64,000 bases of DNA from Bugula neritina. Taxonomy: Eukaryota; Animalia; Bryozoa. Below the pieces are notes generated by a model. The model was not told the DNA's origin, did not search any database, and saw nothing but the letters and a program-made list of their open reading frames with translations. The stretch's first letter is position 1. Each line of letters begins with the position of its first letter. Below, piece by piece: positions 2,568-62,848 of the stretch. The translations under genes and the position numbers were made by a program. The stretch is from positions 27,775,504-27,839,503 of the forward strand of contig OZ037765.1 of NCBI GenBank assembly GCA_964035545.1, in the 5' to 3' direction.

Positions 2568-4253
2568 CTGTTACATTCAGGTGCTGCAGGTTGATACACC
2601 TAGACACCACTTCGCACAGGGCATTGTTTGTGATATTCCGGCAGCCATTTAATTCGAGCTGACGAAGTTCTGGACAGCGTTTGGATATGAGATGCAGGCC
2701 TTTATCAGAAAGTCTCACGCACTGTTTCAGATTCATGGATTCTAAGGTTAGACAGACGTGCGGTGTTTCATAGCTCAAGCGTCTGAGTAACAGTTTCAAC
2801 GCTTTATCAATATTCAAGTTTTCATCATTGATTTGTATTTTGGTCCAAAGCGACGGCTCCCATACCAGGTTGTACCACCTCGTGCACACCCGAGCACATC
2901 GGCAGAGGTGGTTGGTAGGCAGGTATGAGAAGATGTTTAGCATTGCTTCGTCTGGCAGATTAGCAATGCTTGTCCACATTCTTCCTTTCTTCTTTAAAAT
3001 GATATCATAGGGAGAGTCACGCCACTGTTGAGGAGGAGGGGGTGTCAGCGTAGACGCTGCCGCCCCTGCCACAATAGGAGAGTAGGCATAGTTCTTGCTA
3101 AGCAGTCGTGCTTCATGAGTCAGGAAATGCTGCGGCACGGCAGAGTCAAATATCATATCATTACTACTGCTAGATGAAGCGTAGCCTGGGTTTAGTCTGT
3201 TTGAACGAGCCTCATCAGTGTCAGGTGAAGAGGAACGAAACTTGTAGGTACTGAGACTAGAGTTACTGCTAGACGGAGGTCTTAGCCAGGTTGGACTATC
3301 ACTAGCTATTCCAGAACTGGACTCCAGGGGTGACTCTATCAGCTCCGTGATATCTGAAATGGGCAATAGCTGACTGCAAATACGTTTGTATAGAAGTCTG
3401 CTGAGGTCAGCATAGGCTGCTTATGGAGTCAGCATAATGATAAACAAAACATGGCAAGTTGGGAAAGAACAATAATTGTGGCCAGGTTGCCAAATAGCCA
3501 GTGATTAGGTAAATCATATTCGTTTCTGTTTGTTTTGGACAGGAAACTAGTGACATTTGCTTAATTAATTTGTACCATGTTATATCTCACATAAACCAGC
3601 AATTATTAGTATTAGAACTAAATTGATGGAGCCAACGTCATTGCAAAAAAGATTATAATACAATAGAGATAGATAAACGGTTTTATCAGCAAAGGGTGCC
3701 TGCAATACCATTGCAACTTGGCAGCACTGGAACACGACACTGTTTTATGTTTAACAAAATGTCTTTAGCAGAACTCTGTCTTTTGGCAAACAACCATTTC
3801 ATTAATATAAAAAAGGAGTAGTACAGCAGAAATTCACAAAGAAAAAAAAATACATCAAATATCAAAATGAGTTTTTACAAGGTCAGTGATTGCAGTCCAA
3901 CAGTTTCTAATACTGATAATGGTGGGTGCAGAGATTTGGATTTTTACTTAGTTTGGGTTTACAATATTTTGGTTTAACATTTGGTTTGGAAAGTAATGGC
4001 TTTATTTTACAAGAGGACAGCTTTTCAAAAACTCTAAACTATGCATCTGGCCTGCACCTAGTCGTGTAACTATTCACAGTGCATATTGTAGTAGAAGTAC
4101 AGTGTATACTAGATGTAGAGATATCAGAAACTGAATTGACCCACCTTTATTATGAACTATATCATTCATAATCTCATCCCAGTCTGTGAACATCTGTGGA
4201 CTACCTGCCATACGCGATGCTGTGGCCACACCTACAGTGCCGCCTTCGGCCAT
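2568..4253 (-). CDS. FBXL7: F-box/LRR-repeat protein 7, 5' part (exons 4253-4145 and 3416-2568; remaining LRR exon(s) lie left of the window)
   Basis: F-box LPDEAMLNIFSYLPTNHLCRCARVCTRWYNLVWEPSLW followed by LRRs (LSDKGLHLISKRCPELRQLELNGCRNITN...LQHLNVTG), closely resembling recalled FBXL7. ATG at 4253, donor AAAG|GTGGGT and acceptor AAGCAG|CC are phase-compatible (phase 1). Donor ACAG|GTCAGT at 2568/2567. Confidence 0.9.
3482..3730. mobile_element. Possible degenerate MITE in the FBXL7 intron
   Basis: Imperfect terminal inverted repeats CCAGGTTGCCAA (3482-3493) and TTGGCAGCACTGG (3718-3730). Internal CAATAGAGATAGA also occurs near 1937. No clear target-site duplication. Confidence 0.25.
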
Positions 4254-7200
4254 CTTGCTCTACAATGTGTCGAACACCAACACATGATAATATTGTTGCA
4301 TTGACCAGGCAACATAAATAAGGAAAGTAAATGAAAGGACTTGAAATTGTGTATTTTTATAGCCTATAATTCAACAGCTTGACAGAGAAATGAATTTATA
4401 TCTTGAAGAGAACATCCTGCCTTTTTGAACCTAAGAACATGACATGCAGTAGTCTGTTAACTGCAAGCATGTGCAATCAGAAGTTGTGGCTTCAGAAAAG
4501 GTTACTTTTATAGTATTATGCAATTAGCTTAAAATTTTGGTGCACCAAGAAGTTAGCAAAACACTCTTATGTTAAAAATATCACTTAGTAATGGGTACCA
4601 TAGAACTCTTAAAAACAGACAGTATATATAAATAGCAACTATCACTGTTCAATAACTTGAGAGCTAACCCAGCTAGAAGTTATAAGCATAATTTAAATTA
4701 AGACCAAAGGTTTATTTCTTACATAACTAAAATTTAGAATTGTCCATTGCTGGCCATAAGACATTTAGTGCAAAGCAACTATGCCTACAGCTGTTTCAAT
4801 TTCACTTTTAAATAGTTTAGTTACTTCACCAAGTCTACAGCACATTCACCAATACACTAATCAGTTTTCACCCACAATAACATGTCACCATCACACTAAT
4901 AACATGGTGATGGCATAAGTACAAGTATTACTATTAGCATTAGTGATTAGTCACACAATGATATTGATAGTGCTGCTAATATTTATATTGCATTTGTAAC
5001 TAACTAAACTACTTGCTAAACAATATTAAATTATATCCTTATCTTTTTTACATTGTAAATCACTAAATGATTTACTTTTTGTCATTTACTACAAAACTAA
5101 ATGCAATGGTCATACTGATAGTGACAGTAATCAGTAATGTCATGCAATGCCAATAGTGAAAACCCTAATGAAAATTAAATATTAATAATTTACTTTACTT
5201 TTAGAATTAGTGTAACACTTATACTTATAGTTATACTAATATAAGTATTATGTATGGGCTATACTAACAGTTATAATAATAACTATTAAATAATATAATA
5301 ATTATATTTAGTATTTACAATATTAATAATAATCTAATAGAAATACTGATACTCATTGTCTCATTAGTCATTACTAATAGTAATATTAATCACTATCAGT
5401 AATACTAATTGTAAATTGCTAAAACTAAAACTAAAAGTAAAAGTTAATGCAATCGACATTCTCAAACTCCAAGTGAACGTGAATACTTATACTTATAGTA
5501 ATAGTACTACTACTACTAGTAGTAGTAATGATATGACTCCAAGTTCAATACAAGCTTAACTTACTATAAGTATAAGTTTATAACTATAAGATTAGGTATT
5601 ACTATTACTTTTAGTATAGCTATAAGTATTATTATTACTATTAGTATTACCAGCGAACTTACCAATCACCAAGTCCAATGGCGAATGGGCAATGACACAC
5701 TCAAAGCGATCACTGAATCAGCAATGCTACTACTACTAGTACTATTACTAGTATAAGTATTAGTATTACTATTGGTAAAGTATTACTATTAGTATTACAT
5801 TTGCTGTTAGTATTACTAATAGTAATACTAATGCTTATACTAATAGTAATAGTAATAGCATTAACAATAAATCCCGCTACTCTCTAGGCTCCAAGTCTGA
5901 ACAGTGAACAGTAACACTAAGTCTAACTGGAAGTGTTGTTAGAGCTACAGGCTACTAGTACTAGTAGTAGTAGTAGTAGTACTATTAGTACTATAACAAT
6001 GAGTATAAGCACTCCGGCATGTTTATGTTGATCACCAGTTGACGTTCTTGTTTGACTAGTAAAACCGCTGGTTTTGGGCAACAGCAAAGCCAAAGACGTA
6101 CGAGTTTTAATGTACATATAATTATAATGTCAAACACAATGGCACTGGGTGACCGAGATGCTTGCAGAATGAGAATAAGTCGGAACGACACATCCACTCC
6201 AATATAACGGCTACTGCGCTATGCTACCTGTAACATACAATGCGGGAGGCAACTTCTAAAATACCAGAATGAAATTTGCATATTATTATATTAAATTGTT
6301 GACAATAAAAAAGCAAAGCTGTAGATCTACCATTGCAAACTGAGGACAAAATATTCAAGTCAGGTACAATATAGATTCTAGAGCCACAAATTCTATAGCA
6401 AACACTAATGTTTTAATTTTTACTGGCGGTTATAAATGGCATTCCTGCTGTTTACACAGAGTTCTCTTTTTTTGTATTGTACGGAGTGCAAAAACTTTTG
6501 GTAGGATAACTCTAAGGAGTACAGCAGGAGCCAAATGTAAATTGTGTTATTAACATACTGTGTAAATTATCTTTTCTCTGTACGTGATGAAGTTAGGCGC
6601 GGTTTTTCTTTCAAACAGCAGCTGTAAATAATAACAACTGTTTGCTTGTATTTTAAATTATTAAAAAAGTTTTATTAAAAAATTGTTTATATTCAAATAA
6701 TATTTAATAAATTTTTGAATAATAATAACAAACTTCTTGTTTACTCGAAACTGTGCAATATATAATCTATCTAAGGGCAGAATATCTATCCACAGTTCAG
6801 CTGAATTTTCATTTTTGTAGGTTACCAGTCACTAGAAGAAACTGGTTAGCTTTTCTATCTAATCATGATGGTGTTTAATTTTTAATGGCATAAATCAGTG
6901 GTTTAATTATGGCAATCATATTGCAAAAAGCATGGAAAAAAACTGAACTTCTACGATCAATCTATTGATAGGCTATGGTGCTTTTTAATGCGATAGCCAA
7001 CTCAAACTGTAGTTTCAGGTGAGACTCAGACTTTCACTTTCACTTTGGGTTTGTTTATACCAAATCTTATACACTAATAATTATAATATGCTAGTCCAAT
7101 GTTAATAGTAATCTCAAGAGTATTTGTAACAGCTAAACAAGTATTAATAGTGAAAACACTACTAGTAGTAGTACTACTAGTGAACTACTACTAGTAGAGT

Positions 7201-44158: not shown

Positions 44159-54369
<10,211 letters not shown>

Positions 54370-54913
54370 GATTTTGCATCTGTGGAAGCTTATGCTATGT
54401 TTACAAAGGAAACTGGTATATGACCTTAACGTTATGGTTTCTAGTGCCTGATGTCAGAATAAAAATATTGCAGGACTCTTGCAGATGTGGTAGTCAACTA
54501 GAAATAACTGACATTTTAACATCATATTCACCATACATGCATCATTATACGAAACTGTAGCAACTTTCAACTATGAGTTACGTTTATTTACTTTTATTTT
54601 TCTGTTTATTTTGGATGATTGTTTTTTTATTCTCCTTTATTTTTATATCTTATATGTAACAGCTGCTTGTCTCTGCTAGAAATGAATATGAATAAATCCA
54701 TAAATAACCAATTAATAAAAAAAACTCACTATTTACAAAACTATGTATATATCTGAATTTATTTTATACAATAAAAAATATTATAAAATTGCTTTAGCTG
54801 TCAACAATCAACTACAACCATTTCACCATTCTGCTATACACAATGTCAGGCACACAGTAGTTTAACTTTTTATAAATTATTACAACTCACATTAGATTCT
54901 TGAATTTCATAAA

Positions 54914-57900
54914 ATGTATTCTAGTGTTATGAATGCTGTAGCTTTCTTGCTGCTGCTGTTACAACATCTTTTTGTGAATAATATTAAGTCTCAAAACATC
55001 ACTGTCATGTCAAGGTCACTGGTATATTGTACACATAGTGGAGATCAAGAATGCTCTGTCCAGTTGGCAATAATAATCAATATTTTCAACTGGACTAAAG
55101 TAAGTGACAATGTTATGATTATAAGCTATGATTTTATATGTGATTTGAATAGCCATTTTTAGTAGCGATATATTATTACTACGTTCATTAAAAGAGCAGG
55201 TGGAAATAATTATAATATATTTATAATTTCTTATAATGTGCAATATAAATGCATATATCACACTATGGTGCTGGTAAATTGTTTGTATAATAAAAAACTA
55301 GATTGAAAGTTTTCTGCTTACAGTTGAATTCTTCATGAAGTTTCATAATGCATGGGCAGTTTTCACTGGGCATTGCTGCACTATTATTTAAATATCAATT
55401 ATATAACCCACATGCAAATTACAAATTTATCTTCTGTTAAGCAGTTTGGTTGTACATAGGCTTGATCTTAACATTTTATTCCTGAAACTATAGTCGCCTG
55501 ATAGATGCTGCTGTGCCATAAGATTCACACATATTTCTTTGCTTCTTGTTTATAGATATTTTTTTGGTATGTGTTGAAATAAAATGAACTAAATTCAACT
55601 CAACAAGTCCAGTAAAAGGAAACATAGTCACAAATTGATTTTATAGTTTGAGAATTTAGTACATAATAAGACTGTAATTATTTATATAATCGTATGTTAG
55701 GTGATATTTTGTTTATTTTCCAAGTAAACTAGTAAGATGGCAACTTTTGATGTCTACTGCTCAAGGTAATTACATACATGTGTACAGAATTAAAGCCACG
55801 ATGTAAAATAACTTTAGATACAAAGCCATGCAATATCTGTTGATCATATAATGGAGAATGGCAGAAGAGTGAAAATTTCCCCTCCACTAGAAATAGCCAT
55901 TAAACCTGAAATCGGCACAATTACACACGACATGTATAAGCTAGGCCAAGTGAACGCAGGACCTGAGATAACAGAAATTGATAGCTATTCCTGTTCAAAC
56001 ATTTCTCAGAAAATGAAAACATCCTGTTTTTGCTGCTCTAAACCCAAACTGCTACAGGAAGCTGATAATAGTAGGTCAGCAGCAAAAGTGAAATGTATCT
56101 ATGACAGCAATACATGGTACAACCTTTACGCTGCTGGAAAAACTTATGTAGACCAAAATCTAACCGGTGAGTTATCAGCAGTAAGTGGTGAGGAAGGGTG
56201 GTTTGCTAGCACTGCCAGTATATAAGTTAAATCTAATAAACATAGTTTATTGATAATATTATATTGTTGTGGCAGTAATAGTGTTACTTCTTCTGAAATA
56301 TAACTGGGTGTCATGGTATGTCCAAATTTATGTTTTGTTGGAATAGTACTGATTAATAGACTATTTTGAAACTGTTTGTTAAGAGTTATGTTCTCCTTAA
56401 AAAGTAGCAAACTTGGCATAAAGTACTATTACAACAGAATAGAAACCTAAAATGATAATATCGAAATCATTTTAAAACACTAAGGGATGGTGTAGTGGTA
56501 TAGCAAATTAAAAACAGGCATAATGCTTAAAATTCAACAGCTGAGTACAGTTGGATGAATGATTTTGTATGTTATGCTGTTGTGTAACTAGTGGTGATGG
56601 AAAGCTTTCTAATATTATAATATGAGCCATGGGCTATGCAATGTGTCCGAGCATTTTACATTTTCCGTAGCCATAGTCCATAAATCTATACACATAGAAT
56701 AAATATGAATCAGTGTTAGTTGGCGCCAGTATATATATTTTTTACTTCATGCCGTTGTTTATGAAGTTAAAATAAAAACAAATGATATTGTTATTTAACT
56801 GGTTGTATTGTAGTGGACATATTGTGGAGAAAAAGCACATCCTCTAAGTTACAAACAAACAACTTTTTCTTCACTGGAAATCAGAGAGAAAAAGAGTATA
56901 ATGAAGTAGTTGTGAGAAATATAATTCACGCAGAAGATAGTGCGGTAGCTTTGTCGCCAAATTATCGATTACTTGTATCAGAAGGCAAGTGTTGTATTAT
57001 AGCATTGTTGTTATACAAGCTTTTGGAGAAAAGGCTATGAAAAGCTTTCAGTTAAACAGCTAATGTCCTATGTACATCCTGATTTCCCTCTCTCTGTACT
57101 ACTCAACTATAGTTAACATGTTCTGTGCACAATAAACATATTTGTAGCAATCCTATAGCAAGGTCTATGCATATATACAAACTCACTACACTTTGATAAA
57201 CTACTGAAATATTTAACCATATTGATCTTGTTATTGTTTTTTTGTTGTAAAAAATAAGTAATTTGTGATGTATAATTTGTATAATTTGTAAGTTTGTTAG
57301 AGTCTTTTATTAATGTAAAACATGAACACTTTCTGAAGGAATTAGCACAGCTGTAGTCTGCATAAACCATTGCTGTGTTACACACTGTAAGACTAATAAT
57401 CTGTATGCATACACTGTAGATGACAGTGATGGTCAGATGACCACAGGCATGCTAGGAGACAAGGCTTTGATGATTGATAAAAGCAAAATTGACTATACAG
57501 GAAAAACGTGTGCAAAAATTGGAGTGTCAAAGGAAACCATCATAAAGCAAAGAGACTATTGTAGTCCCCTTGTTAGTTGTGTAGAAAACCAAATCAAAGA
57601 TTTGTTGTCAACAGCAAAACTGTCAGTAACTGTTCCCAATTCAAGGTTAACAGGAAACGTTGATAAGAGAAAGTTGACTCGACAAGGCGTGGCAGCAAAT
57701 AGTTTGGAGATTTACTTACCAGCTGAAGGTTATTCAATAACATAATTTCCAGTAGCTACATGTACTTTATAAAGAATGTCCATATCTCCACATTGTTCCA
57801 TAAAACTTGCATTAAACAGCTGTTATGTACCTGTCAACTTTTCCAAGTGTTCTAACATGATTAGTCTGATTAAATAGTAAAGAATATGCAATATTTTATA

Positions 57901-60900
57901 AAATGCTTTACAGCTTTTTGGTGCATGTTTTATTGTAAATAGAATATGTTTTAGATACTCTTTTTCTGTATGATTTCCCTTCAGCTCAAATATCAGATAT
58001 TTGGAGCTACTCGACTAAGAACCAATTCTTCAAAGTACACGTGAGTCATGCTGCTCAACCTGTTTCTTTTTACCTCCACTATTATCCTTCAGAGAACATA
58101 TTTAATTTTTAGTTTATGTAACCTTGTGCGTTACAAACAGCCAGGTTGGTTACAGTAGCTGGTGTAGGCTGGAAGCTGTAGATAATTTAAACAGAACATC
58201 TAAAAAGTATATAGGGAGCAGCCCTGGTCTAGGGGGTTAGAGCGTTTGTTTAGTAAACACGAACCCCTACAAGGCCATTGGTGATGTTAGGAAGAGCATC
58301 CAGTCACAATTGCTCCTGTGCCCCATACGAATAAGTCTTTAGCCCAATTTAACAAAAAAAAACCTTTTTCATCAGGGGTTGCTCACAAGGATGATGACTA
58401 TAACCTTGCGTGAGTTTTTCTTTCATTTAGACAGTGGGTGGTAAACTCTTCATAAAATAACTTCTTTTACAAATAACATTTCTGATAGAAGTTGAAACAT
58501 AATAGATTATGTAACTTGGCTGATTACTAACTGGTTAACTTATTCACATTTAGTAATTAAAAGCATTTAAATAGTTGTTGGCACTTATAAACAAAGATTT
58601 GTTACAGAAGTTTTATACAATTTTAGGTCAAAATATTTCATCCAATGAATACAAGTGAAGAAGTTATGGTAAAAATAAACCATTGTGATAGCCCGAACAT
58701 TATAATGAGACCAGTGATACCACAGCGTGAAGTCCTGACTAGTTACCAAAGCAGGGAGTTTCTGTTTACAATCTCTTACAGGGAAAATCCACCACTTGTT
58801 ATTGATGACATAAAGTGCATTACAACTGTTCAAAACTACCAATCCAAGACAATTGCTAGGCGCAGGTAAAAACTTCAACTCCCTCGCTGTAAGGCTTTGG
58901 TTCAAGATATAAGCTTTGCATTATAGAGTTAATGTCAGTGATTAACTAGACACATACAACTGTTTTTGCCAGTTGAGCAAAGTAAGGACAGCCCAAGATT
59001 TTGAACAATGTCATGGTAAACAATAAAATATTAAATAATGATATTAGCAAAATGTCTATTTTAATTTTCAGTTGTTAATTCAGTTGAAGTGTTGCCTTCA
59101 TGTTATTTACAGATTTGGTCTCAATGTATTGCACGCTGGTCACTGTATAGGACCATGCAAATGTATTTGGCTAAAGAAGTTAAGTTCTAATCGAAAATGC
59201 AAACTGATGGAACTAGAAGAAGTTATAGAAGCTGGCTTTAGAGGAAACAACTATATCACCAATGGCTTTAGTCATTTTAAAGATAAAAAGGTAAACTGCT
59301 TTAATTATAAATATCTTTCATGAAAGAACTTTCTAATATTTTCTGAGTGCTTCATATAAGCAAGTTATTTATAATTAACTCAAATTGTTTTGTCTTGACG
59401 TTTTATTTGTTACATGCAGCTTATTTGTAATTGTAGTTTGTAAATTGTAGGGTTTTTAAAGATGTGGGTCAAATACTGCAGGCTTATTAGGTTGGCTTAT
59501 TAAGTTGAATTATTTATTTTATATAATACAGTATTTATACAGTTAGAATAAGTAAGAGGAGCTCACAATGTAAACAGCTATCATATTATGACATCTTTCA
59601 GAACTGCGTTCAGTTTATTCTCAAACACCCAACATTTTTTAATTGATTTTTAGATAAGCTTGTCAACGATATCAGGAATAGCCCTACTATTTTCATCAAT
59701 GTTAGTTATAGGGTGGATTAAAGCAATTGCTGGACTTTTTCAAAATTGTAACAAAACCAATAAATTTGGCTTATGTCTGTTTACAAGGCATAGTACAAAA
59801 CAAAAAGACTTTGATTGGGTAAATCTTATCAACTTATAATACTATTATAATGTATGTAATTATATATTAGTATACTGTATACAGTTTATGTATATAATTT
59901 AATGCTAAAAGCAATAAATTAGTATAAATAATTAAAGTTCTAACAGTAAAAATATTATCTTAGAACAGTGAACTAACAATTTTGAAGTTTGATAACAAAT
60001 TCTACCAGCAATTTGTATAATATGACTTAACAGCTTTAAAGCTTGAATTGGCCTATTAGTATAAAGACATGTACATCAGTGAAACGCACTTTATTGTATA
60101 GGATGTTAACATAGCTGTGTGAACACATTGTGTAAAGATAAATAATGCCTTTATCCACATTTTTTGTTTTTCTACATTGTAGAACATATTTCTGCAGTGC
60201 AAAAGATTATATGTTGGTTAAACTATCTGAACATCTAGCTTTTTGAGTGCTGATAGCAGAAGAATGATATTTATTAGGTTAATGTTATTACAGGAAGTCG
60301 GTTCTGCCTATGCCAACATCCAAACTCGCCAACCTCCTGGCTTCTCAACCACTCTCAAGTTCTTTCTTATCAACTCCTTGTTTTTGTTTTACCTTCCAAT
60401 TTTCCCACTGCACTACGCAATACTTAAATGTCGATCTTACAATCAGCATGTCCATGGAAAGATTCGGAAACCTGTTTTAACATCAAATGCTGGTCTTGGT
60501 CCAAAAGCAAGAAAAAATTTAAAGCAAATAAATAGTAAGTCATTATAAATAAATCTTGACTTAAAAAACATTTTTAGATATTGTTAATTTTTTTTTGTCG
60601 TTGTGACATTATATAATTTGTCTTAAGTTTATTTACTGCATCCTCACACCTTTCAACAGCCAATTTGTCAGCAAACGATAACTCTGAAAAGCGCGAAAGG
60701 GATTGGATGGAAGATATGCTAATATTTGGAAAATCAGAATCTAAACCAGTTAAGGGTTTTAGCCAAGAAACATCTCCAGCTGTGCTTGAAGTCACCAGCA
60801 CAATCTCTAGCAGTCCATCACTGGGTCAAAGTTCGTCAAGCAATAATTTATTCTTTGGCAAGAAACATGTTTCAGAAAATACCCAGAGAAATATTAGTGA

Positions 60901-62516
60901 CAGACTAAAAGAAGATTTCATAAATGATCTGAGAGCTCAATCTAAGAGGCACCTTAAGGTTTGTAGTTGCACTGAAAAGTTTGTAGGTAATGTAGGCTTA
61001 TAGCTCTGTAGATAAACTTGGGTTAGTGAAGGCAAGTTATATACATTTTTCACAAAAACATAGTATTATCTTTATCCAGAAGTTTGCATCCAAGAAGAAA
61101 CTTTATTGTTGCACATCTTTGCTAATGACATAGGTAACTAAAATATTCATCAACTAATATACTTTCAAAATTAAGCTGTTGCTTTGAGATTCAGTCTTAA
61201 TTGTCATTCACATGAGATCTTTCTATTGCTTAACAACACAAATGGAAGAACCCAACAAAGTGTTTGAATACAAATTGTTTACAGTGAAGTGCTTTAAGAT
61301 ATACCTTTCTATAGCTTATAGAATCTGAAATATCTTTAGTTCTATCACTGACTTGAACACAAGATAGGAAGATATACATATTGACCTTAGAAATTACTGT
61401 TAAATCTGCTTGCTTTTCAGGCTTCCAAAAAGCACAAAAATAGACATAAGGACTCTCCATTTCTCAGCAAGTCCGTAGAGCACCAACCACTGGTTAGCAG
61501 TGCATTCTCTGGAACTCTGGGTAGCTGTTCATTTGATCAGGACGAAGAGTTGCTGAACTACAAGGTGAAAGTTGCTCACCTCATTTATACCAAGTCAGTG
61601 ACTTTCGTTTAAGAAGCCAATGAAAATTATATAATTTGATAATAAAAACTTGTTCTGTGATCAGTCTTTTAACAGATTACTGTGTTATGCGAACTGCGAA
61701 GTGTGGGCTGCTAGATATGCCAGCTAACAATATTCATGCTAAGATGGTTATGTAGATTACAGAGGAAATACTTAATAAGAAGGAAAGAGATAAATTGGAT
61801 AGGCTGCTTGATATAGAAACACCATTATACTATAATAGCTGCAGTCCATTGCAGGGCCTTGTGAACCCAGGGTCTATGTTCAGCTTGTGTGGGAGACTTC
61901 AGAAGACTAGGAACTTTGTTTATCAGGTAGGATATGTTTGAGATTACACTGTTACATGCTTCATTACACTAAGTTTTTGGATCATACGTGTAAAACAGAG
62001 GCTATGTAATACACTGTAATACTTTTATTAAAAATAAAAGAGAAACTTTTTTATGTTTACTACTTTATTTATCTAAATAAATGTAGTTTACTCTATTTAT
62101 TTAGATAACTGAAGTAGTAAACAAAATGTTTTTCGTATATATTTTTTTAATGAAGTTACTAGCCCTTAAGGTTATAATATTTTTCATCATTGCAAAAGAA
62201 CTACTGTTACATCAACTATCAAAAATAATGCTGCAATGCTTATGAAAGCAGTCACTATGAAAATTATACTATGCATGTATATTAATAAAGTTGTGACAGG
62301 TAAACAGAGTCTATCAACATTGTTTTGCAGTTTGACCTTGCACTGTATAAGACACAGCTATACGAGTGCAACAGAAATTACCTAGTGCAGCTAGAAGAGC
62401 CTCAACAACTACACACCAAAGATTTTGTGATAAAATTTTCTTGTAAAGAAGCTATTAAGTTGGTAACTGTCAAGCCTGTGTTCCCATGCCTCAACAAACA
62501 AATAAATTCGCTATAA
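54914..62516 (+). CDS. HAP2: HAP2/GCS1 (hapless 2) class II gamete fusogen homologue, ~907 aa; exons 54914-55099, 55818-56166, 56814-56984, 57420-57728, 57955-58040, 58627-58865, 59113-59290, 59654-59818, 60294-60534, 60660-60958, 61421-61564, 61756-61926, 62331-62516
   Basis: Signal peptide, then VMSRSLVYC-x7-C; QVNAGPE; FCCS; KCIYDSNTWYNLY; HAP2-GCS1 core LMIDKSKIDYTGKTCAKIGVSKETIIKQRDYCSPLVSCVENQIKDL; Ig-like domain III; Cys-rich stem HCIGPCKC...C...EAGFRG; TM ISGIALLFSSMLVIGWIKAIAGLF; second hydrophobic segment; C-terminal domain ending PVFPCLN. All 12 junctions are phase-compatible, 2724 nt with no internal stop. Confidence 0.88.
58214..58419 (+). mobile_element. tRNA-derived SINE, copy 2, in HAP2 intron 5
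   Basis: Same head GGGAGCAGCC-TGGTCTAGGGG, body TGGTGATGTTAGGAAGAGCATCCAGTCA and tail GACTATAA-CTTGC-TGAGTTTTT as 16569-16761. T-arm/B-box partly deleted; extra A/T-rich segment. Confidence 0.85.
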
Positions 62517-62848
62517 CTTTTCTTTAGTTACAGCCGTACTTATAGTAGTCCAATAAAATAGAGAAGTTAATCCAGACAGCAACAGCGTAATATTATATTA
62601 TTTAAAATAAATAATGATACAATAAAAGAGATTAAATTCTAAAAGATTAATTTGAATAAACATATTTGTAACATCCGTGGAGAGATTCTTGCACCGTGTC
62701 ATAATTCTCATCAGAGTTAATACTTCCTATAGCACATGTTTTGAGATCTACAAAAGAATACCTTGAGTTTAGAATATAACATACGCATGTAATAGGCCTA
62801 TTTTATTAAAACAGTTCAAATATTTAACAAATAGTTATGCAAGAATAC

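Follow-up and report, generated by a model that had tools for sequence, protein, structure and literature searches.

The 64,000-nucleotide stretch of DNA analysed here (the "window") spans 27.78–27.84 Mb of the first record of the Bugula neritina genome, which is chromosome 1. At positions 54914–62516 of its plus strand it carries a gene of thirteen exons whose assignment to the HAP2/GCS1 family is supported by signature, profile and predicted fold. We think it very probable that this is the single-copy bryozoan HAP2/GCS1 orthologue, held under purifying selection, and that its product would act as the male-gamete fusogen. To our knowledge no gamete fusogen other than HAP2 is known from across the eukaryotes, and we know of experimental studies of animal HAP2 only in cnidarians. 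A preliminary description of the window had proposed an intact HAP2 gene in an invertebrate genome and a candidate for sperm-egg fusion; the host is indeed an invertebrate, a bryozoan, and the candidacy is a reasonable inference from the features described below.

Gene model and family assignment

The gene model was built independently, from splice sites and reading phase, and its ends are exactly those given in the preliminary description. It begins with an ATG at 54914, the first one downstream of an in-frame stop, and closes with a TAA finishing at 62516; an AATAAA hexamer that resembles a poly(A) signal is present at 62552, starting 36 nucleotides past the stop. The joined exons are phase-compatible and make up 2694 nucleotides or 897 codons, of which the only stop is the terminal one. 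Eleven introns are of the GT-AG type (the exon 1 donor, for example, is GTAAGT) and one, intron 3 (56985–57419), is GC-AG; its donor, AAG/GCAAGT with the slash at the exon end, is a perfect GC consensus and has the same letters in a sibling species (see below). We note that the orthologous donor on contig L004 is apparently an ordinary GT, by reading of the translated contig. The gene lies in AT-rich DNA (26–39% GC in 500-base windows) in which open frames are short.

Family, profile and structure searches were made exon by exon. The clearest match is that of exon 4 (57420–57728, amino acids 236–339), which contains the HAP2-GCS1 signature of domain II. The stop-free piece that includes this exon scores 40.9 bits against the Pfam HAP2-GCS1 profile (PF10699, cut-off 27.4, profile positions 242–304), a check that had been proposed beforehand, and the match covers approximately 57428–57613. 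Exon 4 has seven homologues, mostly exon-sized fragments, in a library of protein representatives. When the exon and its homologues are made into a profile, it matches each of the six HAP2 proteins with a solved structure in the PDB (7S0K, 5OW4, 5OW3, 6E18, 5MF1 and 6DBS, E 1e-12 to 2e-5), and no other entry falls below 0.6. By reading of the alignment the signature motif of exon 4 falls at about positions 260–310 of canonical HAP2. A six-frame scan of the genome with PF10699 (216,009,554 bases in 321 records) gave a single match, of 38.4 bits, at exon 4, and HAP2 is single-copy in B. neritina. These results uphold the family identity that had been proposed for the gene.

Outside exon 4, similarity to canonical HAP2 is near or under the detection limit. 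Against a small alignment of canonical HAP2 proteins, built from the protein collection, hhalign places the profile of exon 2 (55818–56166, amino acids 63–179) at positions 63–189 (Prob 76%, E 2.3e-5), with its FCC motif and W-Y strand matched. The best placements of exon 1 (positions 18–40) and exon 6 (424–451) are colinear with this and not significant alone, and exon 3 received no placement. Pfam scans of the remaining exons, one by one and with E up to 10, returned nothing meaningful, exon 2 alone found no HAP2 among the PDB sequences, and a search with the partial HAP2 P0006 retrieved three proteins only, with no full-length animal HAP2 among them. The search with exon 10 gave no match, a blank that says little.

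Two metagenome contigs, L006 and L007, carry canonical HAP2 genes, that on L007 being apparently whole and compact. Their frames are broken only by TAA or TAG where glutamine is expected (for example in S-Q-G-F-C-C), which indicates that they come from organisms with ciliate-type genetic codes, in which TAA and TAG are read as glutamine; they were rejected as close kin of the Bugula gene.

Ectodomain, membrane anchor and cytoplasmic tail

The encoded product is predicted to be an 897-residue type I membrane protein. Hydropathy of the joined model gives three hydrophobic segments (amino acids 2–24, about 496–526 and 570–595), and, together with the flanking charges, indicates the topology typical of HAP2, with a signal-like start, an ectodomain, one strong transmembrane segment and a tail. 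The ectodomain, of about 470 residues and with 16 cysteines, appears to be of the class II type, with domains I and II encoded by exons 1–5 and domain III by exon 6. The solved HAP2 structures, those of Chlamydomonas (5MF1), Arabidopsis (5OW3), Trypanosoma cruzi (5OW4), Cyanidioschyzon (7S0K) and, for domain III, Plasmodium berghei (7LR3 and 7LR4), show the same type I layout of signal peptide, ectodomain, cysteine-rich stem and one transmembrane helix. As in them, the motif T-G-x-x-C-x-K-I-G...C...C-x-x-N-Q stands in the right place, with the FCC motif and W-Y strand upstream.

Exon 1 (54914–55099, amino acids 1–62) holds the start codon, the signal-like segment (about 54914–54991; judged from hydropathy only), what would be the first strand of domain I and two cysteines. 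Exon 2 would supply further domain I strands and the b-c-d sheet of domain II with its shortened tip, and has five cysteines including those of the FCC motif. Exon 3 (56814–56984, amino acids 179–236), at whose end the GC-AG intron lies, terminates in a motif LL-x-x-E(G) that is kept on contigs L004, L005 and L011. The short exon 5 (57985–58040, amino acids 339–357) leads into domain III, and is 82% identical to its counterpart on L004, 67% to that on L010 and 53% to those on L012 and L013.

Domain III is the sole domain that is encoded contiguously, by exon 6 (58627–58865, amino acids 358–437), which has orthologues on L004, L005, L010 and L011. An AlphaFold2 model of it, made with an alignment of five orthologues, is all-beta, with a mean predicted local distance difference test score (pLDDT) of 86.2. 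The top ten Foldseek matches of this model in the PDB are all HAP2 (P. berghei domain 3, Chlamydomonas and Arabidopsis; template modelling scores by query of 0.65–0.78, E 4e-3 to 0.18). A second, exhaustive search with VIA-align, which covered 48,161 representative chains, puts HAP2 and fusexin chains at ranks 1–4 and 6 (Z 8.5–7.0), the first four being P. berghei, Arabidopsis and Chlamydomonas HAP2 and the archaeal fusexin Fsx1 (7P4L, Z 7.4), and the sixth Cyanidioschyzon HAP2. The margin in Z is modest against a generic immunoglobulin (Ig)-like background of 6–7, but the ranking is consistent across both searches. The model thus points to a HAP2-type domain III with an Ig-like beta sandwich fold, its Z scores against the solved HAP2 proteins being 7–8.5. 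Unlike Fsx1 and the viral class II proteins, which lack the HAP2-GCS1 sequence signature, the Bugula gene has that signature, and both its introns and the gene next to it are kept in the genome of a related host.

Four of the ectodomain cysteines lie just ahead of the membrane in exon 7 (59113–59290, amino acids 437–496), in a stem of the form C-x3-C-x-C-x11-C, whose CIGPC-x-C portion is kept on L005, L011 and L012. Exon 8 (59654–59818, amino acids 497–551) encodes the predicted transmembrane helix (about 59654–59740), for which the Kyte-Doolittle mean over 19 residues reaches 2.04, and, in the flank after the helix, a basic juxtamembrane stretch (net charge +3) that contains two cysteines. 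This exon is 37–43% identical to its counterparts on L005, L011 and L012, and all of them have the exon end W/GT in common. Of the parts named in the preliminary description, the signal-like segment, domains II and III, the four-cysteine stem, the transmembrane segment and the long tail were recovered in this way, and domain I was placed by its colinear position.

The tail extends for about 370 residues beyond the transmembrane helix, and consists in order of the basic stretch with two cysteines, a 25-residue hydrophobic segment, a serine-rich linker, a second basic stretch and a C-terminal module. A basic stretch with cysteines follows the transmembrane helix in many HAP2 proteins, and the length of the tail varies widely among them (PMC8777248). 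Neither the second conserved hydrophobic segment nor the C-terminal module, which set this tail apart from those of the solved proteins, gave a match. The former (amino acids 570–595, about 60351–60425, Kyte-Doolittle 1.5–1.7) is encoded by exon 9 (60294–60534, amino acids 552–632), is followed there by basic sequence, and is conserved on L005, L011 and L012, to which the exon is 36–40% identical (E about 1e-11 to 1e-12). Its flanks carry charges of 0 before and +9 after, and the juxtamembrane stretch further upstream carries +3; because of this distribution a hairpin or an association with the membrane surface is favoured over a second membrane pass.

Exon 10 (60660–60958, amino acids 632–731) encodes the weakly conserved serine-rich part of the tail, with counterparts of the same phases on L011 (E 5e-8) and L012 (E 2e-3), and exon 11 (61421–61564, amino acids 732–779) a basic part with counterparts on L011 (E 4e-6) and L012. 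Downstream of exon 11, at its positions 4165–4494, L012 has a tandem repeat of about 30 nucleotides that translates into P-I-E-L-S-S-P-N-S-I units, and this contig ends before exons 12 and 13. The C-terminal module, of about 118 residues, is encoded by exons 12 (61756–61926, amino acids 780–836) and 13 (62331–62516, amino acids 837–897 and the stop), which contribute its first and second halves. No other part of the protein is as well conserved, the identities of the module to L011 being 54% in exon 12 (E 3e-21) and 51% in exon 13 (E 2e-15), against 28–37% in the ectodomain, and both proteins stop a few residues past a motif PVFPCLN. These two exons found no match in Pfam, the PDB or the ESM Atlas, and no paralogue in the Bugula genome. 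The tail modules may serve in trafficking, membrane anchoring or regulation.

Orthologues and selection

Two Logan contigs (L008 and L009) with about 89% identity to positions 52757–57108 of the window represent a sibling species. Bugula neritina is a complex of cryptic sibling species (PMC11480708), which explains a sibling that has diverged by about 9%. Exons 1–3 are 95.7–97.1% identical in the two (95.7% in each of exons 1 and 2) and have no indel; identity in the introns is 91.5%, with gaps in 114 columns of the alignment. Each of the five splice sites that this stretch covers is identical, the GC donor included. The ratio of nonsynonymous to synonymous substitution rates (dN/dS) is 0.24 over the 235 codons compared, with a dS of 0.105 that is near the intron divergence of 0.092, and the excess of synonymous changes has a binomial P ≤ 7e-4. 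The gene is under purifying selection, as this test, also among those proposed beforehand, demonstrates.

A more distant relative is represented by an 8.5-kb metagenome contig, L011, which tblastn matches to ten exons in order. Identity is lowest in exons 6 (28%), 2 (30%, E 8e-15) and 10 (31%), is 37% in each of exons 4, 7 and 11, 40% in exon 9 and 43% in exon 8, and is highest in exons 12 and 13, for which it is given above. At each of these ten exons the acceptor and donor of L011 give the phase of our model. Counterparts of exons 1 (at 2284–2430 of the contig), 3 and 5 were found by eye, so that all thirteen exons are colinear at 28–54% identity, and intron positions and phases are identical at every junction that was checked. 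All thirteen phase-compatible exons of the preliminary description have counterparts in this relative. Partial orthologues on L004, L005, L010 and L012 support exons 3–11. The conservation extends beyond the gene itself: just upstream of it, at 54061–54369 on the plus strand, is the last coding stretch of a neighbour that is proline-rich with PPPPP runs, reminiscent of formin- or WASP-type proteins, and this neighbour also ends just upstream of the HAP2 orthologue on L011, at 1400–1795 of that contig, indicating that the two genes are long-time neighbours.

Taken together, the sibling species, L011 and the partial orthologues make a pseudogene, a chance chain of open reading frames or an artefactual joining of two genes unlikely. 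The word "intact" used for the gene in the preliminary description is justified by the open frame, the kept splice sites, the dN/dS value and this deep conservation.

Role in gamete fusion and alternative explanations

If the protein acts as other HAP2 proteins do, the domain II tip of its ectodomain would enter the egg membrane once sperm and egg touch, and the ectodomain would then trimerise and fold back, drawing both membranes together. The traits derived in this lineage would be the short, polar connections of the tip and the tail with its hairpin-like segment and C-terminal module.

The tip was compared in detail with that of canonical HAP2. The bc connection is about 14 residues shorter and the cd connection about 13 residues shorter, so that they have roughly half the usual length. 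Nine anchor residues (seven cysteines, a glutamate of strand b and an arginine of the cd connection) are a conserved feature of 38 sequences, although not a formal criterion of membership (Fedry et al. 2018, PMC6089408), and the Bugula protein does not have the full set: the third cysteine of FCC-x-C and one inside the cd connection are absent, and an arginine (in N-S-R) and a glutamate lie at plausible anchor positions in a part where the alignment is uncertain. L011 also has short tip loops but retains FCC-x-C, from which it follows that the shortening is old and the loss of the cysteine pair younger.

Several observations weigh against a HAP2 fusogen of the usual kind. The polar cd connection has almost no hydrophobic residues, and only five of the seven "invariant" cysteines of the b-c-d region are present (amino acids 121, 132, 134, 135 and 155). 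Exons 1, 3 and 6 are individually without significance by hhalign, and domain I and the overall three-domain fold are assigned by colinearity with canonical HAP2 only. The fold comparison that had been proposed for the protein succeeded for domain III, as described above, and not for exon 2, whose AlphaFold2 model (pLDDT 48.9) was too poor for inspection of the tip and was left unused. With a tip this reduced, fusogen activity of the canonical kind is not certain.

One bolder reading of these traits, which we consider rather improbable, is that this bryozoan and its kin among the metagenome contigs have remodelled HAP2. The hydrophobic fusion loops would be nearly gone, a conserved disulfide gone in Bugula, and a membrane-dipping segment and the C-terminal cytoplasmic module the most constrained parts, with fusion effected via a partner or controlled from inside the sperm in place of loop insertion by the protein on its own. 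If true, such a protein would be intermediate between fertilisation by HAP2 alone and the many-protein machinery used by other bilaterians.

It is also unlikely, at much the same level, that the gene is derived from HAP2 and no longer encodes a membrane-inserting fusogen, its product serving instead in adhesion or recognition, acting only with a partner, or taking part in some other cell-cell process of a colonial animal. The short, polar bc and cd connections and the missing cysteines would fit such a change, as would a glutamate/arginine pair that is not clearly kept in L011 and tail modules that are better conserved than the ectodomain. However, HAP2 varies most in its tip loops: the tip of the b-c-d region has three indel hotspots, flowering plants lack one loop, animal sequences show deletions, and loop-poor plant and animal proteins, in which loops are absent or shortened, still function (PMC6089408). 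Furthermore, the reduced tip is under purifying selection and old, being shared with L011, and nothing in the data points to another function. A HAP2 gamete fusogen therefore remains our preferred explanation.

Very unlikely is the possibility that two genes have been read as one, with HAP2 ending after exon 9 and exons 10–13 forming a separate downstream gene. Beyond the exon 9 donor the frame runs for three codons before a stop, AATAAA-like words occur in the A/T-rich sequence that follows, exon 10 contains in-frame methionine codons, and the tail is without similarity to any known HAP2 tail. Yet AATAAA is common by chance in DNA of 32% GC and there is no separate start-exon signal; the exon 9–10 junction is of phase 1 in both the window and L011, exons 9–13 have the same order and phases in both, and L012 has exons 9, 10 and 11 in order. 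Least credible of all is that the gene is a young pseudogene in decay, or a class II fusion gene captured from a virus, since, although most bilaterians have lost HAP2 (PMC2766252) and the protein is mostly too divergent for Pfam outside exon 4, its 897 codons are free of stops and frameshifts, its dN/dS is low with indels confined to introns, its exon-intron structure and neighbouring gene are kept in a relative of about 35% identity, and its signature is that of cellular HAP2 and not of a viral glycoprotein.

HAP2 is patchily distributed in animals: Steele and Dana reported it from a sponge, cnidarians and some arthropods, concluded that most bilaterians had lost it, and described its expression in spermatogenic cells of Hydra (PMC2766252). 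The list of Fedry et al. 2018 includes Amphimedon, Nematostella, Hydra, the annelid Capitella teleta, Tribolium and Acyrthosiphon (PMC6089408, Table S1), so that C. teleta provides a precedent for HAP2 in a spiralian. The Bugula gene resembles these in being retained in a non-vertebrate, and deletions in the cd connection also occur in sponge, cnidarian and annelid sequences (PMC6089408); it differs in that its phylum is outside those lists (PMC6089408, PMC2766252), and no bryozoan HAP2 was found in the literature searched. Bryozoa would thus be the second spiralian phylum, after the annelid Capitella, among the lineages that keep HAP2. As a common fouling animal that can be cultured and whose genome is assembled to chromosome level, B. 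neritina offers in this gene a concrete candidate for sperm-egg fusion. The gene overturns no current view; its minimal tip and its tail modules most deserve to be followed up, as leads on how much "fusion loop" a HAP2 protein needs and on the role of its tail.

No Rfam family matches within 53.5–64 kb of the window. A dispersed repeat at 58210–58420, about 210 bp long and possibly a short interspersed element (SINE), is the source of a GC-richer bump in intron 5; a first look at the genome gave 2551 candidate copies, and the 40 that were scored are spread over all nine chromosomes with 80–87% identity. Upstream of the gene, a long GA/TC dinucleotide microsatellite at 52640–52996 reads as an R-E-R-E "open reading frame" on the minus strand.

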